Source of the DNA: Trichoplax adhaerens
Taxonomy: Eukaryota > Animalia > Placozoa
Assembly: GCF_000150275.1 (NCBI RefSeq)
Contig: NW_002060945.1
Location: 8,200,011-8,264,010, forward strand
Direction of reading: 5' to 3'
Length of the DNA stretch: 64,000 nt
Each line of letters starts with the position of its first letter. Within the stretch, counting starts at the first letter, position 1. A model generated the notes under the pieces. That model was not told the origin of the DNA, did no database searches, and saw only the letters and a list, made by a program, of their open reading frames with translations. The position numbers were made by a program, and so were the translations under genes. Shown here one piece after another: positions 7,067 through 63,404 of this stretch.

Positions 7067-10000
7067 TTATATTCCGCAGTCGTAACTATTGAGAACATCA
7101 TTAATGTTTTTCCTGAGTTTATTAATAATGCTAATTTTATCTAAGGCGATATCCCTTGCCATAGAATAATCTTTTTGATTAACTTGATTAATGAGAGTTT
7201 CATTTGCCTCTACTTGCCGAATCATCTGCCTTCGCATATTCTCGATAGATTCTTTAACTGGATTGGTATAATTTAGTGCAACTTGTCTCGCTTTATTTTT
7301 TTGGGCCAATTCCGAAAGAATTTTAGGTGAAATTTTTTCTAATACATGCAGAATCCTTTTTGTTTGTCTATTGATTTTACTTGCAGACCAGATTGCAGTA
7401 ACCACAGCAGCCGCAACAATGATAGTAATAATAATTCCTATACCAGCTGTTGCTCCACCAATTACTCCTCCGACAACAGCAGCACCAACTCCATCTGCAA
7501 TAGTAAGGCCGACAGTAGCACCTACAGCACTACCACTAAGTGTTCCAGTAACAACTCCCAGACCGGCAAGTAGACTTCGACGTAATCCTTTTCCTTTAGA
7601 CGGAATACCATCCGCGTATGAGCTGTTTTCTATAAGTGACGAAACGTTTTCTAGGTCCTGTATATTATTTAAAATGGAAACATCCACTGCTAACTTATTT
7701 TCCAAATCATCTAATTCCTTTAAAGCCTGTTCATAGCGCGAATCTAGAGATTTTCGTACTTTTACATAAAATTGTTTGAGTAAATTGTTATGATCTTCCC
7801 AAACAGTTAATAAGCGAATAAATCGATCGTCAATTAGTTTACTAATAACATCTTCGATATTAGTAACTTTTTCACGAATTGGTATGTCATCTAATGTCCA
7901 ATGCGTCATCGAAAATTTAAATTTATTACTATTAAAAAAATGAAGCAAAGAAGTTGTAATTTGTTCAGTGTTATCATCGATAATTTTTTCAATGCCTATA
8001 TGAAAATCTTGATTTTCTACGACAGTCTTTGCAGATGAGGTGTTATTTATTAGACTGTCCAAGTAAGAGATACGGTTTTTCTGATCCAAGCGAGAGCAAT
8101 TCGCTAACAAGCGGTATCTATGGGCTACAACCTTCAATAAAGTGTCCAACCAACTATACATAATATAAACAAGACAGTTACAATTAATATTTAAACTAAT
8201 GTATCTATTTTGCATATACATTGGCATGCAGTACCTTATAAAATACGCTACTGCATTAATATGAACTATTAATTCGGTAAAATAGCTAAAAATATCTATT
8301 ACTACTTTAACAAATATCCTAATTGCGATACATACCAGCTATAATTTACTATTGTCTTCTTCAAGCTATCTTCCAGTAGCTGAGAAAGAAGGGAATATAC
8401 TGTTTTCAAATCGTCCGATATATATCCAGCTTTGAGATGATTTGCTGTGATTTGACTCGATAATAATATGAGCTGAGAATCGTGAAAACCTGGCCAAAGT
8501 CGTTTTAAATTTTTCTTAATACTTTCTTCAACCTTGGGTCGATTTGTATCGGAGATAAGATCCCATTTATTACAGATAAAAATGGCTGATTCTGGGGAGA
8601 ATCTCTTAAAATTTCCATTTCCTGTATTTTGAGCCACTCTTAAGAGTCTTACAAGCTGTAAAGTAGTGAACTATTATTAGCTATTATCTTAGATGGAAAA
8701 TTTAAATAATCACTTGGTATCAGCTGTAATTTATTAAAGCTTACTCGGTCTTCTAGTATACCCCCAGCATTTGAGGGATTGATGACGTAAACAAGCGAGC
8801 AGGCTTTAGGCAAATAATTTACGAGCTGCTGTGTTGCTAAAGATGTTTCACCTATCCCTGGGCTATCTACTAAGAAGATTCCATCCTAATCGAGAGCATG
8901 AAGAATTCTATGGTGATGATTTTTGCATATGCTAGCTGAAATTGTCTTTGCATTTTGAACAAATTTTACTAACGGCAATAGCACATTACTAAATCGTTTC
9001 AATAAAACAATCTTCTCAAGTAGACACCAGAAAATTATGATAGACAGCCAAGGCCTTGTCTATTTTAATATAGTCAAATACATTCTACAATGCCAACTAT
9101 TTCTCTATTTTAATCTATATTAATCAAAAATGTCTTAACCAGCTCGTTGGACAAACCTTCAGAAAGTCAAAACTCCAATGAACTTCAATCTTTCCACTTG
9201 TCAGTTCTACATCAGGAAGATCACAATTTACGGTAATATCATTTACTGAGGTAGAGAGCACAGGCGTTTCTTCGGTATCTGTATAGTCTTCATCTTGCTG
9301 AAGTGAACTGTGACCTTCTTCGGCTGCATTGGTGGAGATCTTTTTCTTGGATATCAGGTCTTGGGCACTTTTAATCTTTTTAACCAGGTCAGAAACTTTA
9401 TCGATATGTATTGGCTGCAACGGTTCTAACTTTTTATCCCGTTTATTCCAAATAAACGGTTTCAAGCAAGAGTCTATGGAATAATGTAATTGACATATAC
9501 ACTTTGTGGTATGCAAATGGCCGACTGGCAGTACCGATTTTCCTAAGATTAAGTTAATTAAACTACTTTTTCCAGCGCTTACTTCTCCTAAGATCATATA
9601 CAAACAGATAAAAATATTGACTGTATTATTATCATGCGTAGCTTGCCGTATATTTCTAATTAGAATTATTTAAGATACGAGGATAAAATTAGATCGTTCA
9701 TTACAAATAACGTTGAAAGGATAAAAGTTTATTTTTTATCCTGAACCTGCAACAAGAATTGGATATTTCATATTGTAAAAATTCGCAATCTGGTTATTAA
9801 TATTCTCTAAATAGTGTTCGTCAATGACATTGACTATATCGACAATTTCCGGTTGTAATTCTTGAAATATAAGCTCCTTTGCTTGTAACGATAAGTTGAT
9901 TACTTGTAATTTGCTTTCCTCAAATTTAGTGATAGCAGCTTGGATCCTTCGTTTGCACTGGTTATTTCAAGATTTGTTAGGTATTGATCAGGGTACGAAA

Positions 10001-10467
10001 ATACAATATTTTTATTTGATTTAGTAAAGTACCGGTAGCAGTAAGCAATAAATTGATACCAGAGTTAAGACATGTAGTTTTTATTACAAGTACTTGATAA
10101 TTTAGAACAGAAAGCAGGTTATATCTTAAATTTGCGTTGGTCTAATGTTATCGTGGATTAATCAACTTAAATAGAATACGATATAGTCTGCCGAATCGTA
10201 GGCTGTTTTAGTCACGACAATAATTTTATCCAATTATGTTGCAAAGATATAGAGATGTAATAATCTAATTTAGAAAGTAATAGCACTTACGTAGGAACTT
10301 TTATAGTTTTCAATTGTTGCATCTCTTCGAAATAAGTCTAATCGGTCTTTAAAATCCTGCAAAGTTTTTGTTCCGGTTGAATCGATGTTATATTTTTTAC
10401 AGATATTTCTTGCAACTCTAGCGCTTTTTATTTCATCAATTTCACTCTTTGTTATGGCAGAAGCCAT
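7067..10467 (-). CDS. A1: dynamin-like (BDLP/mitofusin-type) GTPase with C-terminal Gly-rich transmembrane hairpin, ~788 aa, intact
   Basis: Exons 10467-10291, 9957-9747, 9587-9157, 8885-8745, 8655-8336 and 8153-7067 are all GT-AG and total 2367 nt in frame. Motifs: G1 ILVAGEVSAGKSS, G2 HTT, G3 LVDSPGIGE, G4 CNKWD. Hydrophobic segment LLAGLGVVTGTLSGSAVGATVGLTIADGVGAAVVGGVIGGATAGIGIIITIIVAAAVVTAIW lies between coiled-coil regions. Confidence 0.88.
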
Positions 10468-12237: not shown

Positions 12238-15200
12238 ATGGCCAACATCGATAGCGAAAAAGGTATACTCATAATTACTCAATTATTTCTGGCAATCTTT
12301 CGTGAGATTAATTATAACAATTTGTAAGCTTAGGCAAGTAAATGACATTATAATACAATGTAATGATTCAACGTCAATAACATCGAAATAACTTGCTGTA
12401 TAGGAATACTGTACACGTACTCGTACGTATGTAGGGTCTTGAAATGCCGTGTTGTTTTGTAGAGTTATTTCATAAAAAATGAAAGAATGCTAATTAATCT
12501 TATCATATCTTAGTCAAATCACTTTTAGATCAATTGGAAGCAGCCAAGTACGTCGACGAAATTTTCGATATCGCCGATGAATTCGACTGGGACATCGATG
12601 ATAGTAAAATCGAACCATTGAGGAGACAAGCTATACAGAACACACTCAAACTGCTGCCTAATGAAAATCAAAATACATATCAAGATGTAAGTGCCGCAAT
12701 TGTTTCAACTGATATTTATCAGCAGTTTACTTTAACAATTATGGACGCAGTAGATTCATCAGTGCACGCAGCGCAATCTTCAATTAACATGTAGAATTAA
12801 CAAGTGTAGAATATCACATTTGTATAATACTATAAATAATCAATCACGATTATTATTATGCAATCTGTGGTAATAGCAAGTTTGTAACGTACTAAATTTG
12901 ATAATATCGAATTAACGCAAACATACAACAGCAATCTAAATGTACTAATGCTATATATAGTAATACATCACATTAAATGTACAATCTAATAAATACAGCG
13001 TGGCGTAGTATATAGTAGTATCAACTGCATATTGAAGAAAAGTATAAAAGATCTATATTTAAGAATGTATTAGTTATAGGATAATCTGAAAACACTCCAG
13101 TTTTCAACTGAAATTGGTCTATAATTTCTTTTAACAATTATTAACTTTTCGATCGAATAATAAAAAATCCCAAATAATAATTACAAAGTAGTCAAAGTAG
13201 CGTATAAATGACTTATACTGCTAAAACGAATTTAACGAGATCGATTGGTTAGTATTAAAATAATTATCTTTAGTACCTTATATAAGATTACTACCATGTA
13301 TAGTATGGACGATGTCTGACAGCTCATTTATAATATTGTGACGGAGTACAGACTCCGTAAATTAATTATAGCGTTAGTTTCAGTAATTAAGATTTTATTA
13401 GTTGTTAATAACCTTTATTTATTAGGTACTCGTTAATTTTAATTTTATTAGTAGTCTAGTCTTACTTTTTGTAGACTCTATGCAGAATAGTGTACTTTCA
13501 TTAGCTAGTTAGCTGACGATTGACCGTGTAGTATACGCGTGTAGTTAGAGTAGTCTTGGATGTCAAGACCACCTTGGTTTAATAAACTAATTTAAAAGCC
13601 TAAGTCTAGTTTACTCTTAGCCCGTTGGGGGCACATTTGGCTATTGTAGCCTTAATATTTATACTGATTCAAAGACCCAGATTTCCTTGTCGTGAGCTGA
13701 ACACGACAAATATTGACACAAACTGAAGCATAACCAAGAGTTATATCCGCAACTTAATTGTTATAGGAAATTGAAAAATTAAGTCGTATCAGTGTTGATG
13801 ACAATACGGCAAGAAGCAAAATAAAAATTCTTCATGAAAGTGTTGAACGCCTGGTAAAGATAAGTAATGAATCGTCTCTAATACATCAACGGGAAGAATA
13901 TGAAAAAAATCTTAAGCGAAGTGATAATCATTCCACGCTAGAAGATTTTAAATATCCAGTTCTAGTTACGGGTAATGTTAATGATAATTATATAGTTATT
14001 TTTACATACTGGTAGTTTATATCATTAAATACCTATCTAGATCGAAATTAGATGCGGGATATTGCTGTTGTCAAATTTTATTGATTATGATAGAGAAATT
14101 CCATTTTCTTAGTTCAACTGTGGCAATGATAATGATAATTGATGAATATAGTAATTAACTATAATTCAATTTTAGGTGAAACTAGTGCTGGAAAATCCTC
14201 TTTGCTGAATTATCTACTTGGTATAGAGTTATTGTCAACTCATACACTAAGTTGTACTAATAAAATATGTGAAATCAGATATGGTGAGATGCCAAAAATT
14301 GACATAATCAATGCTGACAGTGGTGATAAAATCAGTACTAATAGTTGGCCGCTAGATAGTAAAGATTCTGCCATAAAAGAAATTCGGTCATTAACCACGG
14401 ATGAAGGTCTTTTTGGGCACCTTAATAAGGCTAGTGGAATGAAAGAAGGTGAAGATCCATCCAATCAGCCATTGATATTGGATGAAGATGTTTCCCAATA
14501 CTCTAGTGAGAATCATGAAGTAAGACCAGGTGAAGACCCATTGACCCATACGTCGATGCTAGATTGTCTTTCCCGACACCCTAAGCAAGAAAATAACATA
14601 ACAGCGCATAAAGACTCTCAAGATCAGTTATCAACACCAGAAAACTGCTTCCAAAACACTAACACAGACAACGAAAAGAAAGTAAGAAGAGACTCATCAA
14701 ATCAGTCGGTAACATCGGAGGAAAACCTTTATCGATCCCTGCACGAGGACTTTGAAGCGGTGGCAAGAAAATTACCATTCAATCAGTCAGTAATCTCTGA
14801 TGAAGACCTTTACCAACGATCTAATATGGGTAATGAGATGATGTTAAGTGAATCCTCATCTAGTTTGACGTTTATATCGGAAGATCCTTTGCAACATTCT
14901 GACGAGGATGACGAAATGATAGAAAGTAAAAGCAAGCCTAATATACTAATTAGAATACATTGGCCGTCTAAATTCCTTAAGGTAAGGACGCGATGGTGTC
15001 AAAAATCCTAATTACGTGTATCAAATCATATTTTGTAAACAACTGTTTTATTGAATACATAGAAGCTTATCTAAGAAAGCAATATCATTCATTTTATTTT
15101 TCTCAAATATTTACTTAATATGTTCAGTGTACAATTAAATTACTTGTACTTAATAGTAATATAACATCATTGTGCAAACGATTTAATACTATATTTTCTT

Positions 15201-18200
15201 TACGGTACTGTTGTTTTACTAGCACCTCAAGTAATTCATTGTATCGCGCTCTAACAGTTTTAAAATAGAGTTACTTACTTGAGTGATTATGTTTAAGGGT
15301 GGCATGCAAATTGTTGACAGCCCAGGGATTGGCGAGAAAGAGAATATACCAAAGGTCTTGAAAAAGTACATTTACAAGGCGGTTGCCTACGTTATTGTTA
15401 TCGATTCTGGTAATGCTGGAGGGATACAGGAGGGAAGGGTAAAGTATATTTGAATAGAACTATATAGAGAAAGGTAATTTACATGATGTTTTATCCAATG
15501 TTTGATTACGACTTCATTTGATGCTACATGACCTAGCTTCAAAACTTACTACAAGAAATATCCGGTGTACTGGGAAAGGATGGCTATTCGAGTTTTGAGT
15601 CTTCAATGGCTGTATTTGTTTGTAACAAATGGGACACCGTACCGTTTTCGGAAAGAGAAGAAGTGAAAAATGATAGTTTAAGAAAACTGAAACGCTGCTG
15701 GCCTACTATGGTGGAATCTCAAGTAATATTCTTATCAACTAAAATATTGTTGGAGGCTAGAGCTTACAATCCCGATGCTTTAATATTACCGGAAGCTCAT
15801 CGATTATTTGATAAGCTTATTGAGTTGATTCCTATTAGTCGTAAACGGAAACTTTTCAGATTTTACAGGTTAGTATGTCATAGTCAAATAAGTATTAGCT
15901 AAAGAAATAATTCATACGGTATCTTTGCGATATTTTACTTTTATCTTCAGGTGTATGATAAAATTCGTTGAAGAAGTTCAGGAAACATGTTGGTGCTATC
16001 TTCTGAAAGCAAATTCAGAAGATTATCGAAAACAAATCTGTGAAGACCAAGCAAAGGAATATCAGCTACTACAAAAAACACATGACTTATTTAAAACACT
16101 AGAAGCAGATAAAAATAAATTAATTGATGATGCAATAACGAAATATCTAAACTTACTTAAGTGTCTGAATTTTAAATCTATTGCTAAATGGTCTGAAAAG
16201 GACCTCGCAGATAAAGAATTTGAAGAAGATAATCTAAGGATACTACAAGAACATGCCGCTAAAAAAATTAGAAATCGATTAAATACCCATCTGCAATCTA
16301 TTGGTGAAACGATACATAATGATCTTTGGAGCAAGAACGATTCACTAATAGAAGAATTCAATGTTAAACTAGATGAAATCTTTCATTTAGTAGTACCTAA
16401 CTCAATTGAATCTACTAATTCCTTTAAGCACAGATACAGGAGCAGTTTTGACTTGGATGAAAGAGTAGGATACTCAAACTTTTCAGAATTACATGGATTT
16501 TATGATTTATGGGCTGACATCGATGCAAAGAAAAGAACTGTTGTAATCCTTACTAGTCCAGTATGGGTGGCTCCAGTAGTCATAGCTAGTTCAATTAATC
16601 AACTTGCGAAATCATTCAGACGTAAACATAAACAAGAAGAGATTCAGACATATAAAAAAAAATTGGCAGAAGAAATGAGAATGAAGACATTGGAATATCT
16701 TGAGGATATTAGCTCGGAAGAGTTTGCCAGAAAATTTATCTTTGAAAAAATCAATTCATTTACCAATACCGTAATAGAAAATGTTAAAATATCTATATCC
16801 AGATCATTAAATTCTAGAATTAAGGCCGCCAAAATTGTTTTAGAGGATAAATGCACGCCTAGAGAAATCAATAAAATATATCGACCGATTGAAAAAGTAG
16901 CAGAAAAACTGCATTCCCAGTTACGTGATTTCTATTCGAAGGAGCTAGCTGTATCATCAGTCAAATTCAATAATCTACGTGGATATGATGAAAAATCTAC
17001 TGCGATATCCTTAGGATTAAAGGTCAATTTATATCGGGCAAGTATCTATATAAGCGGTAAAGAAATTAAGGTCATTATCCAAGTTCCGGTAAAGAAGTCT
17101 ATGCGTGAAATGCATGACTTTACTAATAATTGCAACACCATTATGGCTAGGTAGGGCGCAGTTTTCATCAATAGTAAAAAGAGATAGAGTGATAAAAAAT
17201 TTTTTTTACACGCATATTAAAGCTAAAGAATCACTTTATTTCTTGCAATATTAAGAAAAGCAACTACTATAATACATTCTTAATAATTAATTTATTTCAT
17301 TTTTGATATATTTAATCTCTGTAATCAATTCTATGACTAGATCTCTAGAATCGACAAGTATCGCAAAATTTCTAGGTATTTGCCATTCTCCGAACGTAAC
17401 AGCTATTGGAATTTTCGAAAATTCTCTTTTTACACTCGAAGACTTAATTCTATATGACCAAACCCTTATTGCCGAAGCTGATATGAATATTATTCGCCAA
17501 AATGATCCAGATGTAATACGATTAATGAAGATTTTTTCCATGGTTTATCAAATCATAGAAGGGATCAAATTCTTACATGAAAACGAACTGATTCATGCTC
17601 ATTTGACGCTTGGGAATATTTTGGTAAATTGAACGGCTATTCAGCATAATTTCAAATTTAGATTACAGTACTTCAGATATCGAAAATCTAGCTTGAAAAG
17701 CTGCTTTTAAGATAAGAAACGTCAATCTGGCAACTCAATAATTTATCGAATTAAAATTTTCTAAAGTTCGACCTAGTAATAATCCTTCATGATATTATTA
17801 CTGATAAATTTCAGCAAGTCCTAAATATCAGCAATTTTTTATTTATTTTGATAATAGGTTTACTTCCAAGCAGATCGACTCAAATTAAAGCTATGTCATC
17901 TCATGAAAAATTGTGTAATTGATCCAAAGATTGATTTTGAAAAGTCCATACTCCATTATTTGGCACCTGAAGTTTTGAAAGGTAAATACATTTATTATCG
18001 AATGCATTTGTTTGAGATCAATACCAATAGCTACAACCTTCCTTATTCTATCTCAGTTTGTGATTGTTGCATATATAGTTAGTAATAGATTAAATACGAT
18101 ATGTTAACCATAAAGGCATAAATAAAAGGAAACACTATATATGTACGTATATGATGATTGTATGATAGTACTTGTAATACAGTAGGTGATAAATAACATT

Positions 18201-18728
18201 GTAAAAGGTGGACTGATAAGTTACTAATTGTAGTGCGAAGTATAAACTGTAATCGTATCGAGGTATAACCTCGTGTTGCTATAAATACCGATCATCTATC
18301 TAATAATAAAATGTGGTTATCAATCTTACTCACGGAGTGAACTTATTATTGAAGAACATAACAGTGATATAAACAGAACAATTATAGAGGTCTATTTTTG
18401 TATCACGTTATTAACTTGTTCTTCCACATTCAACGATATGTTAGATCGTAAATGTTTACAAGCTTCAGATATTTACAGCTTCGCAGTATTATTCTGGGAA
18501 ATTTGGCATTGGAAATCGATACCAGAATTGTTTAGCTGGAATATCAATACTGATCCTGGTGAAAAAGTAAAGGATTTATTTGAAACAAACACACTTATTC
18601 CTAAGCTTCATAAAGATTTGTACAGTATTTGCTTTGATTCCTTTGCTGTTAATCCTAAAGAAAGACCGGATATTTTTTCTTGGTATGATACGTTTCAAAT
18701 GCTAGAGAGTACAGTTAACTGCAGATAA
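12238..18728 (+). CDS. B1: dynamin-like GTPase fused to a C-terminal pseudokinase (DSTYK-like architecture), ~1190 aa, intact
   Basis: Exons 12238-12262, 12514-12686, 13767-13971, 14176-14981, 15298-15438, 15537-15868, 15951-17150, 17341-17623, 17858-17981 and 18445-18728 total 3573 nt in frame. GTPase motifs: G1 VLVTGETSAGKSS, G2 SCT, G3 VDSPGIGE, G4 CNKWD. Kinase-fold motifs: IAKFLGIC, QIIEGIKFLHENELIHAHLTLGNIL, LKLCHL, YLAPEVL, SDIYSFAVLFWEIW, ERPDI. The 25-nt first exon is less certain. Confidence 0.87.
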
Positions 18729-19530: not shown

Positions 19531-19589
19531 AAATATGGGTGAATCACTACAGGTTGATAATAGTAGAAGATTTTACTTAAAATTTTAGT

Positions 19590-21040
19590 ATATTGTAAAC
19601 CCGACTGCTTTATTCGGGTTAGAATTTAAAAGAATTTGTAGAATAATTTTTGCTAAGAATCAGATAATGTGATTTTTTAATTCAAGCAAATGAATTTAAT
19701 TCATAAAATATATGTGTGCTAAGTTTTGATCATTAATTACAGTAGAAGTTAATGTTACTTTGTAATTTCATACAGTATGAACCCAAACGTTTGATCTGGG
19801 TTCTAATTTAAGATTGTTATTTTGTTTTAGTGTTGTAGTGAAGCACCGATAAACTTAAGACTAAGATTATAGAATAGTACGGAAATAGATAAATTGTACG
19901 TTAGGTTGTAAGATTGCCTAAGTGTCTAATTGTGGAAGATGTTTTCAGTACGTGTTGTAGTAATTATATTGAGATGCTTATGTTATATTAAGATTCTGAA
20001 AATTATGAAGTAATAGCGCGATAGTAAATTTAGATATGAACTTCTAACTTAATTGGTAAGATATGATTGTACTTGAAGGAAAATCATTGAGTAACTAATT
20101 AAACATAAATCGTGAATATTGCTGTAATAATTTAGGTAGTCCTTGGTAGTTGTGAGACGAACCTAACCTTATGTAATAAAATGAAGTTTACAAGAAACTA
20201 TAGTTCTTGTTATATTTTTGAGAAGACACTTTATCACAAGTGTATATTGTAGAAATGTATAGTTTCAAACTAAACTATACTTAGTATTAATTTAGTAGTT
20301 TTCGGAAATCTAGGGTATAACTTATCTTATCATGTGTGTTTGATCGCTAGTTTAATTTGGAGTACTTTAGAATGATAGTTGGATGTTTATATCATTTCGC
20401 TAATTAAAATGCTACATTTTATAAGTTCGTTATTACTACTCAGCTACATTGTTGAGTTTATTGAATTATGAAATCAAGGTTGAAAGCGTATTCAGTTTGA
20501 AGGAATTTAAATTGCCGAATAGGGTTTATAATTGTTAGTTGTCTCTCCTCTTCGACAGGAGTCTAATTGTTCTTTAAAGTCTTATATAGTTTCTAATCCC
20601 CCGGTACGGACATTATACTTTATACAGATCCTTTATGCCGTTTTAAAGCTTGCTATTTCACTGATTTCATTTTTATTTATAATATACGAGTATGCCATTC
20701 CTAGTTTCTAGCCGTAGTTCGGAAAATATATAGTAAGAAAATTTTTCTATGGCAAAATTTAAATCAAATCCTTGATACTAAAAAGTGACAAAAAACAGAA
20801 ATTAAATTTTTAGGTTTATTCTATACGTCTTTAATGATATGTAATAATGAATAGAACTTAATAACTTCATATCACATTTGAAGTCTAAATGGTAAAATTA
20901 ATTAACTATTGTGATAAAATCCGATCGCTATACTTCTAAAGCTGTAAAAAATTAAAATTTTATTAGATCTAATACAAGGACTAGCTGTACACAGCTCTAT
21001 TCTAGCCGGATACAATCACTGAAAGACTTCTAGAAATATA
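19590..21040 (+). repeat. Non-coding block with a direct partial copy at ~30145-30410 and an inverted copy at ~31280-32690
   Basis: tattgtaaacccgactgctttattcgggttagaa recurs at ~30148. ttgatctgggttctaatttaag..ttttagtg recurs at ~30371 and inverted at ~32400-32440. 20910-21035 is the diverged reverse complement of 31281-31405. Confidence 0.75.
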
Positions 21041-33411: not shown

Positions 33412-33677
33412 ATCGTAACTATGTGAAAGCTTCAGATATTTACAGCTTCGCAATGTTATTTTGGGAAATTTGGCATTGGAAATCGATAACAGATTTGTTT
33501 GACAGGAATATTAATACTGATCAGGGTCCAAAAACAGACGATTTATTTACAACAAATACACTTACCCCGAAGATTCCTGAAAACTTATATACTACTTGCT
33601 TTAATTCCATAGCGACCAATCCTAAAGAAAGACCGGATATTCCATTTTGGCATGATATACTTTCAAGTGCTAAATAG
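33412..33677 (+). pseudogene. B3: orphan last exon (kinase subdomains IX-XI) of a class B gene
   Basis: A tag acceptor is followed by RNYVKASDIYSFAMLFWEIWHWKSITDLFDRNINTDQG...NPKERPDIPFWHD, very similar to B1 exon 10. No upstream class B exons were found between 29520 and 33411. Confidence 0.82.
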
Positions 33678-47700: not shown

Positions 47701-48097
47701 GTGTCAGCTTAGGTTGTACATACTCAGTGGCAATAATATCTTTCTTTAAATTATATAACATATAATTAATAATCTAGGCCTGAGATAGTTTAAGAATATC
47801 TTTCTTTCCAATCAACTACAGATCGTAAACGAATATCTTCTAGCTGTAATGAAGACCAAATGTAATTGTGCAATAAAATTAAAAAGTGCAACCGGCTAAA
47901 AAAATATTTATAGCACTTACAGAATTGCTCTTATAATTTTGGATAGTTTCATTCCTTAGCATTAAACCTAATCGTTCTTTAAAATCGCCCAAAGTTTTTA
48001 ATCCCTCCATACTGATAGCATACTTCTTACAGACCTTTTTAGCATCTTTGAAGCTGCATATTTCATCAATCTCGCATTGAGTTATGAGATTCTCCAT
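44783..48097 (-). CDS. A3: class A dynamin-like GTPase with Gly-rich transmembrane hairpin, ~789 aa, intact
   Basis: Exons 48097-47921, 47639-47429, 47316-46880, 46642-46502, 46419-46100 and 45866-44783 total 2370 nt in frame. Motifs: ILVTGEVSAGKSS, HTT, LVDSPGIGE, CNKWD. TM segment AGAGIITGTVGSGIAAAVAGASMAEGIATAAVGGVIGGVTGGIGLIISLISIAIIDGVLIAA. Confidence 0.88.
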
Positions 48098-50592: not shown

Positions 50593-51515
50593 CAATTTAT
50601 AAAGGCTACTGTAGATTCTAACAAACTAAGCGCTCTTTAAAATGTCCAAAGGCAGTGCACATATTAAGATTGAATATCAGCATGATTTTTTAAATGGATG
50701 GTAACATGTTAAGGTAGAATGTGAACTTTAAATATGTTTTACCGTGGTAATCAAGATATAACGCGACGTAGCAATAATAAGGTATAACGCAGTTTTAAGT
50801 TATATCAAGTTTGTCAGCTAGATTCTAAAATATTAGATGTAACTGTTGTGACTGCGATATAAATTTAAAGATGGCTTTGGTAAAAAAACTAATTAATTTA
50901 ACAATGTGACATTGTAATGTGTATTACTTCCAACCCTACAGTATCTAGTTACACAAGGAGATTTAGTTTTCTACGTAGCGGTGGTTAAAAATAATTTATT
51001 ACTTGAAATATTTCGTTGAATTTTACAGTAGTAGAACTAAAGATAATGCAAATACGCACATAATTAGCTCAAAGCTATCGGCCCCTCTCCCACTCTAAGG
51101 AGTGGGCATTTTAGACCTTTCTAGGAAGGATTATTGATAAACATATTTACCCAATCCCTATTTCAGTCTATTCAAGTAATATCTTATTTTAACTTCCAAT
51201 ACTACTCCTTATTCTAATTAACACTTAATATGGCTCTTGCAAGTGCGAGACCCCAAGCTACGTATGATTGCCATCCCTCACTTTGGGTCAATCATATGTC
51301 AAGTACTGAGACGTGCAACACTTAATAAGGGTGCCTCTAGCACCGCTAATCTACTATCTTATTTACGCGGGGGCTCAGCTTAATCTAGTTTTCCTACTGA
51401 TATTTAGCAGGAACTCGAAGCTTTGACATGCTATCTTGAAATACTTCATCACTGTACAGTACATACAGACTTTAATTAATGTATGAAATCAGCTAATTTT
51501 TAATCATAACCCTAG

Positions 51516-51688
51516 CTGAGTCACTCCTGGCCGAACTAGAAGTTACTGAGGACATCAGTGAAGTTTACGATACTGCAGATCGATTAAAATTAGACGTCGA
51601 TGCAGATAATATCTCATCCTTAAAGGTTCAGATTATGCAGACTATCCTTAAACTACTGACTATTGATAGCCAAATTACATATCAAGAT
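51516..51688 (+). pseudogene. Orphan class B exon 2 (not in the ORF track), head-to-head with A3
   Basis: A tag acceptor is followed by 173 nt, the same length as B1/B2 exon 2, encoding ESLLAELEVTEDISEVYDTADRLKLDVDADNISSLKVQIMQTILKLLTIDSQITYQD. The donor GT has become AT. Confidence 0.85.
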
Positions 51689-52429
51689 ATAGATAATTAC
51701 TGCCTGATTAATTGTCTTTTACAGTATTTTGTAACGATCATTAATAATTAATAATTTCATCAATTAATAAATCAATAACATAAGATAATCGCGTCTTAGT
51801 ACCACTTTATTTTCATTTAAATCGATCATTGCTAGTAGATCATATTCAATTATGTTGCATAATGTTATCGTATAAGTGATGCATTCTGTTAAGATAAAAT
51901 TTAACATGTTATAATGTATATCCAATATGCTAATCCTGTATAGTACATTACTTTTGATATAGCATGCCGTGTGTAAAGAGTTCGATAGAGTAATCTCAAT
52001 GTAACATTAATGAATGCATGAAATCAACACCGATACTATCCTGTATGGCCGTTTATGAAAATTGAGTAAATTATCAATAAAGTGACCAGTAGTTAGCTTC
52101 TAACGATAAATAAAACATCAAATATTTACGTGGTAAACACTGAGCTTATATTTTATATAATACGATCAATCACGCAAAACTAAACCTATACAAGAAATGA
52201 TCTTAAACAAAGAAATAGTCACCTTAATATTATCATTCTGACACTAATCCGACTGCCCAAAGTATAATTATAATTTACGGAAATCGGAGTATAGTTTTAC
52301 AGAAATTCCACTCAATAATTACCTTAGTATTTAAAAGAAGTTTCTTTCGATACTACCGCAAATATCTATCTTATCACTAGTGTAGATTTCAAAGAAGTAG
52401 ATCGCTCTAGATAAATGGTATACTTAATT

Positions 52430-53847
52430 CTATATTTCGTCGTTATAACTTTTTAATAGCAGTTTGGTTTGTAAGAGTGTAATCATATCGAGAAACTCGA
52501 TCAGTGAGAACTTCGTTTGCCTCTAAATGATGACCCATCTATCTTTGCATTTTCTCAATGGACTGCCGAATTGGCATGATATATCCTCCACAATTTTTCA
52601 TAGCTATACCTTCATTGGCTAATTCTAAAATAATTTTAGGAGCATTTTTTACCAATGAAAGAAAAATCCGATTTCTCTGCCCAGTAAAATTTGTTGACAG
52701 TAGTGTACCTGTTGCTGCAACTAAGCCAACTAAGGAAATAACAAATCCGATGCCAGCTATTATAGTACCATCAATTATTCCTCCAGTAACAAGGGCATGA
52801 GCTCCTTCAGCTATAGAACTCTCAGTTAGAGCAAATGCAATACCACCGGTAACAGTTCTCGCCACAACATTAAACCAAAAAGCAATCTTTAGAATAATGT
52901 AGTTCACATATACATGTGGTTATATACAAATGAACAACCGGCAGCACTAATTCGTTTAAGATTAAATTAACGATGCTAATTTTTCCAGAACTTATTTCTC
53001 CTAAGACGTACAGAAGAAAATATTAACTGTTACTACATCTACAAAAGAATCTAATTAGAGACAAGCATGTAAATGCACAGGATGCGTTTCAATGGTTATT
53101 AGCTTAATAATTCAGTATTAAGTATATTTTTTGCACCTGCCACTAGGATTTGATATTCCATATTGCATAAATATTGAATATGCTCTTTGATACTTTCTAA
53201 ATACTGTTCATCGAAACGTTCGACTATGTCAATAAGTTCTGGTTCTAATTTTTGAAGGACAAGCTGACTTGTCCTTTCTAACAATCTAATTGTTTCTAAT
53301 TTTACTTTCTCAAATTTAGCAATAACTTCTTTGATTCCTTAAGCAAGCTATAGTCGTTAGGGAAATCAGATATTACAGCATAATTTGACGAGCGTATTGC
53401 ACAATGCATGTTAAATCAATTTATATAAACTTTGGTAAAAATAAAATTTTTCTTTAACTATTAAAATTACAGATTATTTAAAGAGATGTTGGTAATTAAT
53501 TAATAAGTAGAGATGATTTACATCAATTTATATCGTCATAAATAATTTCAGCTCCTATTTTTATACACTTTCAAATAAAACTTTACTATTTACTTCAATA
53601 AATTTACGTAATTCTAGAATCAAATATTAACAAGAGTAAAAGATTGGAAAGAATTTTTATAGCACTTGCAGAAGAATGTTTATAATTTGTAATTGTATGA
53701 TCCCTTAGAAGCAAACTAATACGTTCTTTAAAATCGTCCACGGATTTTAATCCCTTTGTATTGATGTTGTACTTCCTACTATTAGCCATAGCAGCTTTGA
53801 AGTCATTTATTTTTAAAGATCTCATCATGAGTTTTGATACCAGCCAT
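52430..53847 (-). pseudogene. A4: class A pseudogene with a large internal deletion
   Basis: Exon 1 is frameshifted (MAGIKTHDEIF.../INDFKAAM..KYNINTKGLKSVDDFKERI) and exon 2 has a stop. The degenerate P-loop exon GEISSGKISIVNLILNELVLPVVHLYITTCICELHYSKDC is fused directly to the TM part of the last exon. The G3 and G4 exons are missing. Confidence 0.87.
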
Positions 53848-56800
53848 TTTAGTTGTTAAAGGTAGTTCTAATAATCAGAAGCTTGCCAGTTTCTTCTATT
53901 ATGCCAAAAATATAAATTTTAAAAACTGAACGCCTTAAATTAACGTCTTGAATCATGCACCTTTTTTAAGATTTAGATATATATCAGCGTGTAGAATATT
54001 TATTAAAATACAGAATTGATAGCTTTCGAAGTCATTTCTAGTAATACTCTGAGGTAGTTAAAGTAGTGCACTCGCTTAGGAATTGGAGGAAAATTAGTTT
54101 TCTATTACACATATCAATCTAAATGCCATATTGTAAAGGTTTAAAATTTCTCGCTTATAAATCCTATGCAGATATATCTTTATATGAATAGGAAAAGCAG
54201 AGCAAAATTATAATCGGTTGGTATAGTACATGTATTCCGATAAAGAGGTAGAAACAATGTTTTAATTTTGCAATTGTTTTCCTCAAAATCACGACAGATT
54301 TACAAACCGAAACTTTAATCCTGTATTGAAGATAAAATGTTATTCTGACAAAGTCCCACAAAACTCCAAATCTCTAGCTGGTTAAGAACTTGCCCCGTTC
54401 GTCTTACCATATATTTATTTAAGATTTATGTAGCCATTTGTGGCTTACACTAAAAATCATACATGGTAATATTTTTATCATCTTATGGTACCCTTATCTT
54501 TAAGAGTCTAATATCATAAATTACCGTAGACAACCAGCGGAAACTTGTAATAAATTGAGTATCATACATTAGTGTCTGTAATTACCTTAAATTACGTAGT
54601 AACCTTTGAAGTTTAATATATCTGAACTACGTTTCCTTTATTGAAGTGCGTAATACAAGTGTATTTATATGATTCATTTACGATAAAATAAATCACTTAA
54701 TGATATCTAGAATTTCAAAACTATAACTACTAGTAGAGTTTACGTTGTTCAAAAGTACACCAGCAGAAGGTTGAAATAGTAAGCGACGCATCACGTTCAT
54801 ACTGTACGGTATATACGTAGTAGACATGTCGGTTAGTAAGCTAAATAATAAGTTTTAAACAGTATTTCAAATCTAGCAAAATTAATATAATTGTATTAAA
54901 GTATTTCGATGATTACAATGTATCAAACCAGCACAACGAGAGATATGTAACATCCGGATCTTAACGATTTAAGATTATCAACCTAAATAGTCAATTTTGT
55001 GTCTTCATACGCGAATTACTAATATTTGAAGTGCATTCAACTGATCCCGTTGCATTAAAATTATGCAATGAAATAAAATTCTTTCTATTAGCTCTATCTA
55101 GAACAATAGCACATGGTGACTAATTTGAAGATCAATATAAAGGCGTCATGCCGAGGATTGTCGAGCAAATTGTTTCCGATCTATTGGCGTTATATGCGTC
55201 TGATAATCAATTCAACCTAGAAGACGAGACGCTTTCAATAACTGCCTTAGGCAATGAAATTTTAGTGGATCTTTAGCCAAATTGAATTTGGTAGTCCTTC
55301 CACAAGGTAATGCTACAATAAAAAAAATTGATTTTACTATTTTAGCACGTTTATTTACCATGGATGGAAACTTACAGTCAAGAGTGATTAAAAGATCACT
55401 TCATTTATTAATTCAATTAAACTATCATTCTCATTTAATTAATAATCGTACCATACCTTTAAATTTGTTATGAATGATGAAATATCCTAATTTACCTTAA
55501 TCCAGCCTTAACACGAGCCACTCTTTACTACGATGGTAGCAATTACATGGGAAACGACTAGGGATGCTGATGAAATTATCGTTATCACCGATCTATTCAC
55601 TTTGAGCATCGATGGAGACGATAATTGCCCTTGGGCAATATTTATTCTATTTGCTGTCATAATGATATACATCATACAGTGTACGACACTTGCAGATACG
55701 GTAACTTATCATATAGCGTATTTTTCTATTTCGCATTGCATTCGCCAATTCTAAACTTAACTGTATTATACTAAAGAGTACAATCATTTGCGAATATCAA
55801 ACCATCTCGACACGCATTATAGTTAATCCTGCTGTAGTGTTACTTAGTAAATTAGTTCCATTCCAAAAGGCTTCATAATACCGCTGATTTCAACCCCTAA
55901 CTTGTTGCACGTATTGTAAAAATACGAAAGCTCAAAAAATAGAAATGGCAATTCTATTCACTTAAAATGTTAATTTCATTTAACAATAGCGCGGTAATAA
56001 GTAAAGTATCATGTGGTGATCACATTTATTTTCGATACTATTTATGGCCTTCTCGATAAGAAATCATTAGTATTCATCTTATTATTATTGTTTTCTATAT
56101 ATTGGTTATATTCATTAAAATTAAATTAGTCCAACTTAAATGTATGCATAGGGACGGAAGTATCCAGAAAATTGCTATCAAAAGTATTAATATTGGTTGC
56201 TAAAATGGAGAGCACAGGTACTGTTGCGTTTCTAAAGATTTAATTTATAATCTTTTGGCAACATATTTATAAAAAAGAGGATACAGATAGTTCATAAATT
56301 GCTCTTTGATACTGGAAAAAGGGTAAAGTAGTAATACCGATTCACTGCTAGTACCATAAGCTGCTGCTCTAGATGCTCTTAAATTGCTCTTCGTAGAAAC
56401 TGTTATACAGATTAAATTTTCAGCCTAATGCTACTTTGATCTTATCGCAAATACTAACCGATTACTATCACTACTTGTTTATACAAAAAATTACTATATT
56501 ATCAGTACATTCATGTAAAGTTGTACGAGAGAGACATTTTAGTAAATAATAAGCATATAGGTATAGAATCCAATACTAAATATAGCCAAGAATCAAAATT
56601 GAAAGGTTGTGAGAGAATAGTCCAAGCTGTGCTTTAGATTGTGAGACGATACTAGTGTCTCCTATATTTGTAGATGATATTTTAAGGCACGTACTGGATC
56701 TATCCTACTGCAATGCTTGCTTGTATTGCAACACTGATATCTTAATAGATTCTATTGGGTTATTTGGAATTTGAAAGATTTACTGTCGCGATTTCATTAA

Positions 56801-58100
56801 AGTACTTGCTATAACATTTTTGAGACACTATTACAACATAAAAATTTACTAAATTAGCTCTGTAGCGTTCAAAATTATTTTGATTACCTACACAAGTAGA
56901 TATAGAATAAATAATACTACTTCATGATATCATTTATGAATAGATAAAGGTCAGAAATCCTATATTTTGATATTATCTAGTATTGAATGTTTTTTAAATG
57001 TCAAACCCACTGTGAATGCGAGGATAGTGCATATGATAAATGCAAAAGTAACTTCTCAAAAAGGCAAAAAAGAAACTTAGACTAAAAGCTTATTCTGAGA
57101 TGCGAATACAGCAAACTTTAATAAAGACTAATATAACTTTATGCTGCTATAATAATTTCATTAGTTATATAAGAATAAAATATAGTATATAAGATAACAG
57201 GCAATTTTAAGGAAGGTTAATTTTAAAATTTTCCCTTACAGCCATTATTGCATAAAGCTGTATTGTTTTTCCAGTTTCAGATTTACGCTTACCGATCGTA
57301 GTTGCATTTGTACCATACTAGACTCTGTAGTTGATAATTGTAGATAAAACGCCCTTATAGCTAGATTAGGATTACACTATTAATTTAGTGACATTAAGTA
57401 ATTAAGGGCAGTTTGCAAAATGACAGATTTCGCATACGGTCTCGTTCATATTAAAGGAATAGTAATACTCTTCAAAAATTAATATCAGTAGTGCATGTTA
57501 AGTAGCTGTGAAGTTATGCAGATATAAAATGCTCCGTATATTCAGTTGTAAGTAATTCAGTTTTGTATTTTATTTTTTGCTTATTAGATTGATGGAGACA
57601 TTATCAACGTGTCTCCTTCTGATTTATACGCATATTGCACTCATTGCTCGCTGTATCTTCGTGTATTTATTGATTCTTATTAGTTTAATAGGCATTTTCT
57701 TATAAATTACGTAAGTTCAACGTAATGACACCGCAGTTGTAGTAGAAAAGATCATTTTATTATTTCTCTTTAAATCCCTAAAATACGTTAGGAAATCTAC
57801 AATCTTCTACTTATGGTTTATTCCAAACTTTAATAAATTACCATAAATTTCGTTACCGGTATAGATGTTATTATAATTAATTAATAGTATTAGAAATGTA
57901 GTAAAATTGGATCCTAAGCTTTAATCAGGTACTGTTGCGATTATGACTTGGTAAATTTTTATGCATGATTAATTGATTTAAAATTATTCAAATAGTCAAC
58001 ATTCGTATGGTGTGTTATTCGGTTTTACACGATATATTCGTAAATCTCGATCGTACAATAAAAAAGGAAGATTCTAAGTTTCCTCTATCTGATCTAATAG

Positions 58101-61100
58101 TCCAATCACTCCTAAGTGAACTGGAAGCAGCAAATGATATCAAAGCAATTTTCGATCTTGCAGAAAAGCTGAACTTAGACGATGTCGATGGAGATGATAT
58201 TTTACTATTAAAAATTCAAGTTAGGGAACACATATTCAAACTACAACCTAGTACGGATCAAACCACATTCTCTGACGTGAGTAATACAATCTTTGTATAC
58301 TAAATTATGAAGACAATCATTAGCATACTACATAGCTTAAATAAATGTTTTACTTCGAACATGTTTGGAATGATACATCCAATATTTACAAAGTCAGTTA
58401 TATTAGCATTTATTATGATATACAAAATAAAAAATGAAAGGTTAAAGTACTTTAAACCAAGTAAAATGCAATCCAAGACATAATTCTGATAATGTAAAGC
58501 CATTAAGTATATATATCTTATGTAGCAGATCTATCGTATTATCGTTCTGATAGATGTCAAAATATAGGATATAATTACGAAATAAAATAAGTCATAGCCG
58601 ATCGGAAGCGTTATTAATTTCATTTTAAATAAATAAAAGAAATTCCGCTAAAGAATTTATTAACTGAATAATCTTAAAAATGATCGGATATACCTGGAGT
58701 ATTTTCTATGAGTACTTTAATACCCTAAAATTATTGAGGCTTTAATCTTTAGAATTAGTACAATATTGTCAGCTATTTGTTGTGTTATATATGTAATCAG
58801 ACTAAATATGATACGCTAAGGCCTATGATTTACTACTGCAGTAAAATACATCAGTTTTCCAGATACTGTATAGAAAAATTCAAACGAAAATGATACTTGC
58901 CTATAAACTGTACAAATAAATTTAACAATACTTATCGTAGCAGCGACTACACTTATGAAGGTGATTAAACGGATCTTTGAGTGATCATAATTGTTAAACA
59001 TACATTAATCTTTTATCGCCTTGCCAGTCTTATATCTAATATGATTTTAAAGCAAGTATTTAATTAGTAGCCATCAGATATATGATGTACAAAGACTTTG
59101 TTACTCATCCAAGATGATGTTTAAACTTTCACGCTACCAACTATTGCCTATTCTGCCTCATTAACTTCTTATAAGAAGTTGAGAAATTAAATAGTAGAAC
59201 CATTAATACTGAAGAAACGAGAAATATTCTATCTAATCTTTACAAAGATACGAAATCTCTAGCAGAAAAATTTGATAAATCCCTTGACAGCGAAACAGAT
59301 TACCCTCAGAAGACAAACGTGGAGAAAATGCAATGTGATGAGTCGTCGTTGCTAGAAGAATTTAGGTATCCAATTCTTGTTATAGGTAGCATTTGTTTTA
59401 CCTAACCGTCTCTGATAATTTTACAACATTAAAGATCTATTTAGAGATGCTTTTGCAGTAGAATGTAAACTGGTATTTTAATTATGCCTTTATACCATAG
59501 AGTAATCATATCTTTATTTAAATTGCTAACACCGTATTCAACGAAAATTTTAATGGACTTCTAATCATATTTTAGGTGAAACTAGTGCTGGAAAATCCTC
59601 CTTTCTAAACTATCTACTTGGCATTGACATATTATCAGTTCATACGTTAAGTTGTACTAACAAAATATGTGAGTTAACGTATGGCAAGGAACCTCAAATT
59701 AAAATTATAGATACCTCGGATGGTAGACTTATCAAATCCAAAATTTGGACATCAGAAAATGAGCAAACTGCTATTCAAGAAATTCGATCGATAATTACAG
59801 AAGCAGGCCTCATTAAAGACTCCGGTACGGATAATCGAATTCAAGTTAATGAGATTAGCATCAATTTGTTAATTAGAATATATTGGCCATCTGAAATTTT
59901 GAAGGTAACATGAAAGTAATCTAATGACTTGAATTTGAATATATAGAATCGTACTCCATACCTACATCCCTTTTAATCATGAGTCGTTTATCTACCTAGA
60001 AAGTGATCAAATATTTGTCTTTTCAAGATTAACTATCCTTTCAGTGTAGAATTTTCAAATCTAAGATCTAATAAAATAATTAATTGTAATTTAATTTTTT
60101 CTATAATAATTACCATTATAGCATATTTAATCCTATGCAGCGATTTCTGTCTACGAAAAATACTTGTGAACAGTTATAGTTCATCACTTCCATCACTTTA
60201 TATGGTCTACGGAATTGCTACTTAATTGAACAATTTTTCTGTAGGGTGGTCTACAAATTGTTGATAGTCCAGGATTTGGTGAGCAAGTAGAACTGCCACA
60301 CGTTCTGAAAAACTATATCTATAAAGCTGTTAGTTACATCTTTGTTATCAATTCTGCCAATGCTGGAGGAATTCAGGAGGAGAGGGTAAAGTATAGTCTT
60401 ATCTATTGACATTAAACATAAAGAAAAACGGTTCGATAATAGCCTACTTAATTATTGATCACAGTTTAACCCATGTAATTTTGTTTCAGCTGCAGCAAGT
60501 GTTAGTTCGAATATCTAGCACTTTAAGGCAGGAAGGGTATCTAAATTTTAATCCATCTATGGCAATATTTATTTGCAACAAATGGGACACTGTACCTGTA
60601 GACGAGAGAAAATGTGTAAAAGATGACAGTTTGCAAAGGTTGAAACGGTGCTGACCAGGTATAATGGAATCTCAAGTAGTATTCTTATCCTGTGTTGAAT
60701 TATAGAAAGCTAAGACTGCCAACTATAATGGAATATTGCCACAAGAAGCTGTGCAGCTATTTAAACTGCTTTATAATTTGATTCCAATTAGTCATAAACA
60801 AAAACTATCCAGATTATACAGGTATGCATACCCGCTTAATCTTAAATTTTCAAAATAAATCTAAGATAATAAGCCATTCGATTTAATTTTAAATGTTATC
60901 ATCTATCAGCTGTTAAATTTTCAAATGATGGACTACGTTACTTAATTTTAAAGCTTCATCGTTGCTTTCGTTGAAGAAGTAAAAGAAACTTGTCGATACT
61001 ATCTGGAGCTCATGGAAAGCGAGTTAAAGGAAAACCAAATAAAATTACAACGGTTAGCGAAAACAACGCAATTATGCATCACAGAATTGTCTGTGGAAAA

Positions 61101-63404
61101 GAATAAAATAATCGACAGAATTGTTGATAAATATGTGAAACACATTAAAAGTGCTGATATTGAAGGTTTAACCACTTGGTCAGAGGATGATTTCTCAAAT
61201 GAAGAATTTGATGAAGATAATTTGAAGAAACTACAAGAGTGTGCTGCTACTAAAATTCAGGAACGATTAAATATTTATTTGCAACCTGCTGTTCAACAAA
61301 TACAGAAAGATCTCTATATCGAAAAGGATTCGTTATTAGAAAAGCTCACTACTAGACTAAACAAAATCAATGATCAGGTTCAGCTCAGATTAGTTGAACA
61401 GTCTGGAAAGGAAAATAAATTGCAAACGATTCATTTCGACTCAGATTCAAGAATTGGATATTCAAATTTCTCAGAATTGTACGGGTTCTATGATGTATGG
61501 GCTGATATGAATGCTGCCAAAAAAGTTACATTGGTTCTCACTAGTCCAGTGTGGATGGCTCCTGTATTTATAGCCAGATCGATATACCTTATTGCGATGC
61601 TAATAAAAAGTCAAAATCATCAAGAAGAGATTCAGGAATTTAAACAAAATAAAGCTAGAAAAATGAAAGAGTATACATTCATAGTTCTTGAACATATTAG
61701 TTCAGAAAATTTTGCTAGAAAATTTATTGTTGATACCTTTGATTCATTAGTAAATTCACTATTGATTAGCGTTAAAAAGAATATATTAGAATCATGCCAG
61801 TGTAGAGAGGAGGCTATTAAGAAAGTTTTAAAAGATAAGCGACCAGCTAAAGAACGCAGTAGACTCTATCGGCCAATTAAAAGACAAGCTGAAAATTTAT
61901 TAGCAAAATTAAAGAACTTTTATTTGCAACACTTAAGTGAATCATCGATTAAATTCGAAAATCTTCATGGATTTTGCGAAGAATCCGTTCCATTATCCTT
62001 TGGATTAAAAGTAAATTTATACCGGGCGAAATTTCAAAGAAATGGTCAATTGACTCCTGCTATAATCCAAGTTCCTGTTGATAAATCCGCGCACTCAATG
62101 CATGATTTTATCAGCGATTGCCAAATTATTAAGTAAGATATGATATTCGTTACTAAGAATAATGCAGCAAAATGAAAATTAAAATTTAATGATATTGTTT
62201 GCTTACCTTGAAAAATTATTGATTGATAAACTACTGTGTAATTATAAATAATAACTTCTACCATTACGTTCTGATTGATAATTAAATTCATTATACTATT
62301 TCTGATTATAAATAAATTAATCTTAAAATAAGATCACAAGAATCGCAATATTTCGCCAAATTTCTTGGTATTTACTATACTCCATCGCCCACAATAACGC
62401 CTATTGGAATTTTTAAAAATTCAATTTTAACCCTTCAAGACTTAATCCTAAACGATCAAACGATTGTCAGTGACACAGATAAAGATTTGACTAGATTAAA
62501 GAAGATTTATTTTATGGTTAATCAGATTATACAAGGTATCATGTATTTACATAAAAGTAAACTAATCCATGCCCATTTGACAGCTGGAAACATATTAGTA
62601 AATTGTACTGCTAAACAATCTCACAACTATAAGTATAGTGCACTATGGATACTTCAGACATTAGCTTGTAAAGTAGTTCAAGAGTAACAACATACCAGTT
62701 TTTCTAGATATCTACCTTAATAAATTAAAAATATCTAAATTTGGTCATGGTGCAGACAGTAATTTTTTTAGTGATTAAGATTGTCCAATGTCGACTTATA
62801 TTAAGCGATCTATTATTTATTGTAATAGATTATTTTCCGAGAAGATCAACTCGAATTAAAACTGTGTCATGCAACGACAGAATCTACACTCTATCAATGC
62901 AATAATTTCGAAAAATCAACAATTCACTATTATTTGGCTCCTGAAGTCTTAAAATGTAAGTGTATACATATATATATATATAATAGCTAATTAGCTAAAG
63001 TTATAGATATATAAAAGAATCGGTAACTTTATTTATACTATCCTAATTTCTGATATAGATCAAGTAATTTAATATGAGCAAATATTTTATCACAAACTTA
63101 GCCCATCGTATTTTATTCTATGCGATTAGATAATAGTTATGAAGAAGCTTTAGATATTTACAGCTTAGCCATCTTATTTTGGGAGATTTGGTATTGGAAA
63201 TTAATCGCTAATGCGTTCAACTGGAATATTGGTACTGATCACGATCAAAAGATAAAAGATTTATTTGCAACAAATGAACTTGTTCCTAAGCTTCATGAAG
63301 ATATGAGCAATATATGTGCCGATTCCCTAGCTATTGATCCAGAAAGGAGACCGGATATTAAATCTTGGCACCATAAGCTAGAGGAGGCGTTAAAGTCTCA
63401 TTGA
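58101..63404 (+). pseudogene. B4: full-length class B dynamin-pseudokinase gene with inactivating point mutations
   Basis: Exons 58101-58276, ~59175-59385, 59576-59904, 60245-60385, 60490-60821, 60954-62132, 62333-62597, 62829-62955 and 63130-63404. In-frame stops occur at 60652-60654 (RC*PG versus RCWPT in B1) and 60703-60705. The exon 3 acceptor is ttataa versus ttatag in B1. A possible exon 1 with ATG->ATA lies at ~57843-57858. Confidence 0.85.

Follow-up and report, generated by a model that had tools for sequence, protein, structure and literature searches.

Why two kinds of dynamin-like GTPase gene should stand repeatedly start to start on opposite strands of a placozoan genome, and what their products might do together, is the question raised by this locus. 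The window analyzed here is a stretch of 64,000 nucleotides of Trichoplax adhaerens DNA (assembly GCF_000150275.1, contig NW_002060945.1, positions 8,200,011 to 8,264,010 of the forward strand) with a base composition of approximately 31% G+C and intron-bearing genes. The original prediction, made from these letters alone, described pairs of a minus-strand gene (A) for a membrane-anchored dynamin-like GTPase and a plus-strand gene (B) for a dynamin-pseudokinase fusion, and proposed a membrane-remodelling or immune system of two components. In this work B is assigned, by sequence comparison, to an unnamed animal family of approximately 1000 amino acid (aa) proteins with a Dynamin_N domain, a stalk, a hairpin and a kinase domain, which is reported here as new, and genes of the same family were found head to head in deuterostomes.

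The locus was mapped by self-tblastn of the window, extended with flanking DNA, and all coordinates are given in window numbering. As had been claimed, the minus strand carries every A copy and the plus strand every B copy, with A/B units arranged start to start, and the cluster extends approximately 25 kb beyond the window edge. The database models TRIADDRAFT_54945, 54946, 54949, 54951 and 54954 aligned exon by exon to the locus with approximately 100% identity, and the same genes were present on a single 209,928-bp contig of Trichoplax sp. H2.

Six coding exons with GT..AG borders make up the A genes. In the intact copy A1 (7070..10467, minus strand) such borders were found at junctions placed by homology, Pfam recovered the Dynamin_N domain (8.5e-14) and PDB sequence matches were obtained to Campylobacter Cj-DLP1/2. 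The protein is predicted to run from N-terminal helices through the GTPase and a helical stalk to a hydrophobic, Gly-rich stretch some 60 residues long, followed by about 125 helical residues (coiled coil), and it contains no kinase domain. The GTPase motifs read GEVSAGKSS, DSPG and NKWD, with an acidic disordered insert splitting the domain, and G1, G3 and G4 were intact in A1, A3, A4, A6 and A7 as well as in B1, B2, B4 and B5. Judged by its length the Gly-rich stretch should suffice for a transmembrane hairpin; in the intact A4 gene (TRIADDRAFT_54949, 789 aa; 44786..48097, minus strand) hydropathy analysis placed residues 651-689, with a peak of 2.6, within it. Open reading frames and hydropathy thus bear out the Gly-rich membrane hairpin that had been ascribed to A.

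The B genes open with an ATG-bearing mini-exon (12238 in B1) and have the intron positions through the GTPase domain in common with A. Their products consist of a GTPase (GETSAGKSS, DSPG, NKWD), a stalk, a hydrophobic segment, approximately 150 helical residues and a kinase fold, the hydrophobic segment being 19-21 residues long (ILTSPVWVAPVFIA) in B1, B4 and B5. For B1 (TRIADDRAFT_54945, 1190 aa; 12238..18725, plus strand) the Pfam family PK_Tyr_Ser-Thr exceeded its gathering score on each of two exons, 17291-17629 and 18285-18725, and reached 1.1e-19 on the B1 model P0002. Alignment with relatives gave GLKVNLYR as the glycine loop, VIIQ for VAIK, H[AG]H(L) for HRD and LCH for DFG, while APE was kept. 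The B4 model is gapped at the HRD block, where the genomic exon reads HAHLTAGN. As the β3 lysine, the HRD aspartate and the DFG aspartate are missing in the B copies compared, B is a long-standing pseudokinase, and the residues of its catalytic loop (HAHLTLGNILV, KLCH) suggest decay from a loop of the active type.

The GTPase and the kinase-like domain of B1 are joined in one messenger RNA by spliced contigs, which together with Pfam and the motif alignment upholds the predicted pseudokinase tail. The contigs, 3.8 kb long from runs X4 and X8 and shorter from run X10 (three separate studies), join 13767-13970, 14175-14976, 15293-15437, 15536-15865, 15948-17146 and 17337-17625 at GT..AG sites, and further joints at 17622>17857 and 17979>18443 carry the transcript to the last exon, giving 17337-17622, 17857-17979 and 18443-18725 as the final exons of the gene. 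The runs are taken to be RNA from this splicing, and being assembled contigs they show splicing and presence, not level, strand or start. A Ser/Asp/Glu-rich low-complexity insert of 190 residues, seen only in B1, lies in the GTPase domain between G2 and G3 (14400-14950, plus strand) and is exonic by the RNA contigs; at this site the inserts of the A proteins and of B5 are shorter and disordered, with a pLDDT under 50. The same RNA runs contained 53%-70% of the sampled words of 7001-17000, and since this exceeds the share of B1 exons in that stretch (approximately 30%-35%), A1 was probably transcribed in the same samples as B1.

Two minor observations were made on the RNA contigs at B1. In X10 only, CT..AC joints were present inside B1 exons (14579>14663, 14820>15279 and 15609>15768), for which antisense splicing or assembly artefacts are possible explanations. 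An RNA contig from X15, a run labelled with another organism, mapped to 18065-18363 with eight letters and five gap positions differing from the window, and probably derives from another placozoan strain or haplotype.

To which class of dynamin-like protein (DLP) do A and B belong? Pfam matched Dynamin_N on two exons of the minus strand (9124-9603 and 46862-47365) and on one of the plus strand (14139-15011), with values between 1e-11 and 2e-14 for single exons and of 4e-23 for model P0001, while no GBP or Fzo_mitofusin match was found on the window exons or models scanned. Among solved structures the A4 sequence matched Campylobacter Cj-DLP1 best (5owv_A, 4.4e-10), with further matches to Nostoc BDLP, mitofusin 1 and 2 (MFN2, 1.3e-05) and Fzo1 (3.6e-05). 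An AF2 model of A4, calculated from the near-identical H2 model P0085 (pLDDT 79, pTM 0.77), was searched with Foldseek and returned BDLP 2j68 first over the whole length (E 1e-17), then IniA, Cj-DLP1/2, mitofusins and SynDLP, with classical dynamin, OPA1 and MxB far behind (MxB at rank 45, 7.6e-07). BDLP was also the best match (5e-15) of the B5 model (pLDDT 74). The TM-scores (target) of the A4 and B5 models against 2j68/2j69 were 0.45-0.55, and the C-terminal domain of B5 matched the kinase domains of JAK, TYK2 and ACK1 with a TM-score (target) of approximately 0.7. By sequence match and predicted fold both A and B are placed in the dynamin superfamily, within the BDLP/mitofusin class; this agrees with the original prediction as to class, while the likeness to Mx and GBP that it had also drawn was not supported by the structural ranking or by Pfam.

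Other searches were less informative. The ESM Atlas gave weak leads only (a Campylobacterota GTPase, Fzo-like and DLP_helical), and as to kinase subfamily, single exons searched against PDB sequences had generic matches only. Models P0002, P0087, P0068 and P0055 had no identical sequence on record. The C-terminal exon of A and the large exon of B showed no similarity by pairwise BLASTP or by profile-profile comparison, and both profiles match stalks of the wider family. A search with the A C-terminal-exon alignment returned no match, but covered only proteins of 233-740 aa, so that this blank is uninformative.

Bacterial DLP pairs (Cj-DLP1/Cj-DLP2, 5owv; Nostoc BDLP, 2j68) have in common with A and B a GTPase, a neck/trunk helical bundle, a membrane-inserting tip and the encoding of two divergent paralogues side by side. 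In bacteria the majority of DLP genes occur as operon pairs. Cj-DLP1 and Cj-DLP2 are monomers on their own, and a 2:2 hetero-tetramer has to form before GTPase activity, lipid binding and tethering are seen (PMC6104087). Unlike these, the Trichoplax genes contain introns and are divergent instead of forming an operon, A has a long Gly-rich predicted transmembrane hairpin and B a C-terminal kinase fold; heterotypic assembly, required for the bacterial pair, is proposed here for A and B. We know of no kinase fold in bacterial DLPs. Mitofusins and Fzo1 belong to the same dynamin-superfamily branch by sequence and fold and have the same order of N-terminal GTPase, helical bundle, transmembrane hairpin and C-terminal helical region, but identity over the aligned structure is only about 13%-16% and B differs in having a kinase domain. 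Mitofusin isoform pairs act heterotypically.

With a profile built on the large exon of B, 1.84 billion representatives were searched. Strong matches were confined to Trichoplax, and weak ones (E 5e-8 to 2e-4) were to amphioxus and Ptychodera proteins of approximately 1000 aa with Dynamin_N and kinase domains. Further searches yielded more than 40 family proteins, with E values down to 2e-64 against B1, B2, B4 and B5. Among the matches listed, which are not proof of absence elsewhere, the hosts were Saccoglossus, Ptychodera, Glandiceps, four Branchiostoma species or hybrids, at least nine bivalves and the coral Desmophyllum. Examples such as Branchiostoma XP_066272439, Ptychodera XP_070564254 and Saccoglossus XP_006813730.2 resemble B in architecture, in length and in their C-terminal TKL-like kinase; GTPase-part intron positions and head-to-head pairing are likewise common to both, and most relatives have the motif LTSPxWxP in a hydrophobic hairpin 31-35 residues long. 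The A stalk profile matched family stalks at 1e-12 to 1e-5, which makes A a kinase-less member of the same family. Three more distant members were located on T. adhaerens contig C1411:210278-233360 (loci L014-L016) in tandem or tail-to-tail, not head-to-head, arrangement: in the first, G4 is weakened (THKD) and the kinase is a pseudokinase (YKN, EFG); the second combines a degenerate P-loop with a retained HRD and EIG in place of DFG, and in the third both domains are degenerate.

Family members are annotated as 'uncharacterized' or with arbitrary, mutually unrelated kinase names, and full-text literature searches found no description of the family, of the TRIADDRAFT identifiers or of a link between DSTYK and dynamin. 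DSTYK has a large N-terminal region ahead of a C-terminal kinase. The RefSeq name 'DSTYK-like' is given to one bivalve family member; other annotators use unrelated kinase names, and this single name is a lead only. Zebrafish Dstyk is needed for membrane fusion with the notochord vacuole by a route that is unexplained (PMC7012607).

Examination of loci fetched around family members revealed two family genes start to start at five loci in four deuterostome species. These were L007 of Ptychodera flava (intact kinase P0026, pseudokinase P0045), L011 of Saccoglossus kowalevskii (P0099 and P0044), L018 of Glandiceps talaboti (P0048 and an orthologue of P0045) and two loci of Branchiostoma lanceolatum, L008 (P0010 and a P0050-type gene) and L017 (P0007 and P0068). 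VAxK, HRD and DxG are conserved in one member of every pair, and the other member has HxEL or HLDL, and NIG, instead. The start codons are 1.1-2.9 kb apart except at L017, where the spacer is approximately 6 kb and contains a retroelement. A kinase tree sets the bilaterian pseudokinases to one side, and with the five loci this dates the head-to-head arrangement of an active DLP-kinase with a DLP-pseudokinase at least to the common ancestor of hemichordates and cephalochordates. The Trichoplax cluster differs in having neither an active kinase nor its residues, A containing no kinase domain and B having lost all three. The recurrence of divergent pairing in other genomes, posed as a check in the original prediction, was thus found at the deuterostome loci, but not in scallop, where the copies are tandem.

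The spacer of L017 has been invaded by the retroelement, seen as a reverse-transcriptase gene model at 4598-7752 of that locus. At another B. lanceolatum locus (L012, 10001-22068) a 647-aa 'bacterial dynamin-like protein' model (P0075) has a 177-aa kinase model 1.8 kb downstream on the same strand. P0075 was not counted as a case of kinase loss, since the adjoining kinase model probably reflects a split annotation or a broken copy.

In Trichoplax the pair itself was copied as a unit, as had been suspected, since decayed first exons of the missing partner were found at the expected distance beside lone B2 and lone A4. By tblastn and translation, a remnant of A exon 1 with two in-frame stops (20525..20707, minus strand), the dead partner of B2, lies 1.9 kb upstream of the ATG of B2 (TRIADDRAFT_54946, 993 aa; 22608..29517, plus strand), to which model P0031 maps and in which GTPase and pseudokinase are intact; a remnant of B exon 1 (51512..51697, plus strand; tblastn), the dead partner of A4, lies 3.4 kb from the A4 start. 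The divergent pairs A1/B1 and, beyond the window, A7 (74264-77900, minus strand)/B5 (82099-88049, plus strand) are intact. Of the three divergent pairs originally described, the pairing as such was recovered, but the A gene facing B4, here termed A5, is a pseudogene with the P-loop GEISSGKIS, and a further unit of A remnant and B2 has to be added. The cluster comprises five A/B units of adjoining divergent DLP paralogues, counting intact, pseudogene and remnant partners, with spacers of 1.8-4.2 kb between the partners.

A non-coding block of about 320 bp is shared by the A1/B1 spacer (11245-11552) and the A remnant/B2 spacer (21315-21620), with 66% identity over 319 bp by blastn, and is a candidate for a shared promoter or 5' untranslated element. 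Its presence in two units also speaks for duplication of the whole pair. No third copy was found in the genome assembly searched (105,631,681 bases, 1414 contigs). The Trichoplax paralogues are only 33%-62% identical in protein, which indicates that the amplification is old, and in the one copy compared, A4, a single residue of 789 differs between T. adhaerens and Trichoplax sp. H2. The fast turnover implied by the birth-and-death evolution that had been proposed is not evident in these values.

We consider it about an even chance that A and B form a co-regulated, heterotypic membrane-remodelling pair from which kinase chemistry has been lost in Trichoplax. On this interpretation the locus would be an amplified module of two genes for paralogous, membrane-binding GTPases of the BDLP/mitofusin class, transcribed divergently from the shared intergenic region. 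The two proteins would be co-expressed and would assemble as a heterotypic complex on a membrane, with A as the firm anchor and B weakly anchored, and GTP-dependent association of the GTPase domains could then lead to membrane tethering, fusion or reshaping. Docking or regulation would fall to the surface of the B pseudokinase, which can bind but cannot phosphorylate, so that Trichoplax may keep the module without its phosphotransfer step. Outside support for a hetero-pair comes from the head-to-head divergent paralogues at the five deuterostome loci. A wider proposal, which we regard as tentative and rather doubtful, is that the module is older than the placozoan-bilaterian split: two BDLP/mitofusin-class membrane GTPases, fused to a kinase and to a pseudokinase, would have stayed head to head because they act as one heterotypic machine coupling phosphorylation to membrane tethering, fusion or rupture. 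In form this would resemble a bacterial DLP operon pair to which kinase/pseudokinase logic has been added, a machine amplified and phosphotransfer-free in Trichoplax and with vertebrate DSTYK as a possible surviving relative.

Several results weigh against a coupled pair. A3 (36270..39739, minus strand) retains its GTPase motifs, but most of its hairpin is deleted (a 33-residue gap) and with it the membrane segment, and in B2 the hydrophobic segment is deleted by alignment gap and hydropathy. B2, A4, A3 and A6 (67406-71165, minus strand, beyond the window) are lone genes, and with one partner lost in several units a partner encoded alongside does not seem obligatory; the scallop copies are tandem. 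A complex prediction with residues 121-400 of A4, residues 125-358 of B5 and two GTP scored 0.04, which we list here although it is evidence neither way. In the kinase tree B sits on a very long branch without a resolved position, and approximately unbiased (AU) tests rejected neither a grouping of A4 with the active-kinase genes (p 0.44) nor a grouping of A4 with Trichoplax B (p 0.46).

Only full-length database models entered the trees, which therefore lack A1, A3, A6 and A7, genes analysed one exon at a time. The GTPase tree nested the four B genes in the clade that includes the pseudokinase partners of deuterostomes (88/90), and A4 branched outside this clade and close to the active genes; A4 and the B stem are very long branches. 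First-exon profiles gave a weak and mixed signal, A resembling the active clade of Ptychodera and Glandiceps and the amphioxus P0050 clade, and B the hemichordate pseudokinase and scallop clades. Given the long branches, the AU tests, the kinase tree and the active-like decayed loop of B, we assign neither A nor B to one of the deuterostome partner types. As the arrangement is conserved, we lean slightly towards an inherited Trichoplax pair, in which A would have shed its kinase, over parallel invention.

The locus can also be read without any coupling of the two products. A single ancient inverted duplication followed by segmental copying would also leave A and B genes facing each other, with the proteins acting alone or as homo-oligomers on different membranes. 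The AU result for A4 with Trichoplax B fits such a history, as do the persistence of lone A3, A4, A6 and B2 with intact reading frames, the tandem or tail-to-tail members on C1411 and the scallop arrangement. What this account finds hard to explain without selection on the pair is the same orientation of divergent paralogues of opposite kinase status at five loci of four species, in both hemichordates and cephalochordates, and we therefore judge it rather unlikely, at somewhere near one chance among four. A further alternative, which develops the immune system of the original prediction, is a cell-autonomous immune or membrane-damage system evolving by birth and death, like the Mx, GBP and IRG genes or the bacterial dynamin-like anti-phage pairs; in it the pseudokinase of B would be the sensor and A the executor on membranes. 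The cluster is amplified and contains pseudogenes and orphan exons, the distribution of the family among animals is patchy, with multiple copies in amphioxus and bivalves, and the pairing of kinase with pseudokinase in deuterostomes recalls that of RIPK3 and MLKL. A two-gene dynamin-like operon protects bacteria against phage (bioRxiv 10.1101/2022.05.11.491447). Neither A nor B contains an immune domain, however, the paralogues are old and the compared copy is nearly unchanged between two Trichoplax lineages, and the predicted fold resembles BDLP and mitofusin far better than Mx; an immune role appears the least probable of these explanations.

To our knowledge, DLPs of the bacterial/mitofusin class are represented in animals almost only by the mitofusins. 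The family described here adds a second, undescribed animal lineage, fused to kinases, arranged across deuterostomes as divergent pairs of opposite kinase status and amplified in a placozoan in a version free of kinase activity. If the partners assemble, the heterotypic DLP pairs of bacteria would have a tractable counterpart in eukaryotes, and phosphorylation would be linked to membrane remodelling in a new way. The amphioxus and acorn-worm pairs are candidates in which kinase-to-pseudokinase regulation could be tested, and Trichoplax A1/B1 and A7/B5 are candidates for a kinase-independent function. The control of membrane fusion by DSTYK is a lead raised by the family which can be checked.

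The remaining features of the cluster are incomplete copies and the second gene of the A5/B4 unit. A decayed A remnant (A0) was found at the left cluster edge (3221..3619, minus strand) as an exon-2-like stretch with 44% identity to A4 exon 2 by tblastn and a ruined P-loop, GEVSEAEIN. By the same method an orphan last exon of B encoding the kinase C-lobe, 62% identical to that of B1, was detected at 33405..33677 (plus strand), and an orphan fragment of the A C-terminal exon (part of the stalk) at 34649..34978 (minus strand). The pseudogene A5 (52446..53855, minus strand) is internally deleted, a truncated P-loop exon being joined to the hairpin region, and stands head to head with B4 (58007..63401, plus strand). 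TRIADDRAFT_54951 is a partial model of B4; the full H2 model (P0043, 1016 aa) contains GTPase, stalk, hydrophobic segment and pseudokinase. Immediately to the left of the cluster lies an unrelated neighbouring gene, with an exon encoding a Doublecortin (DCX) domain at 1086-1499 on the minus strand (Pfam, 7.9e-14).

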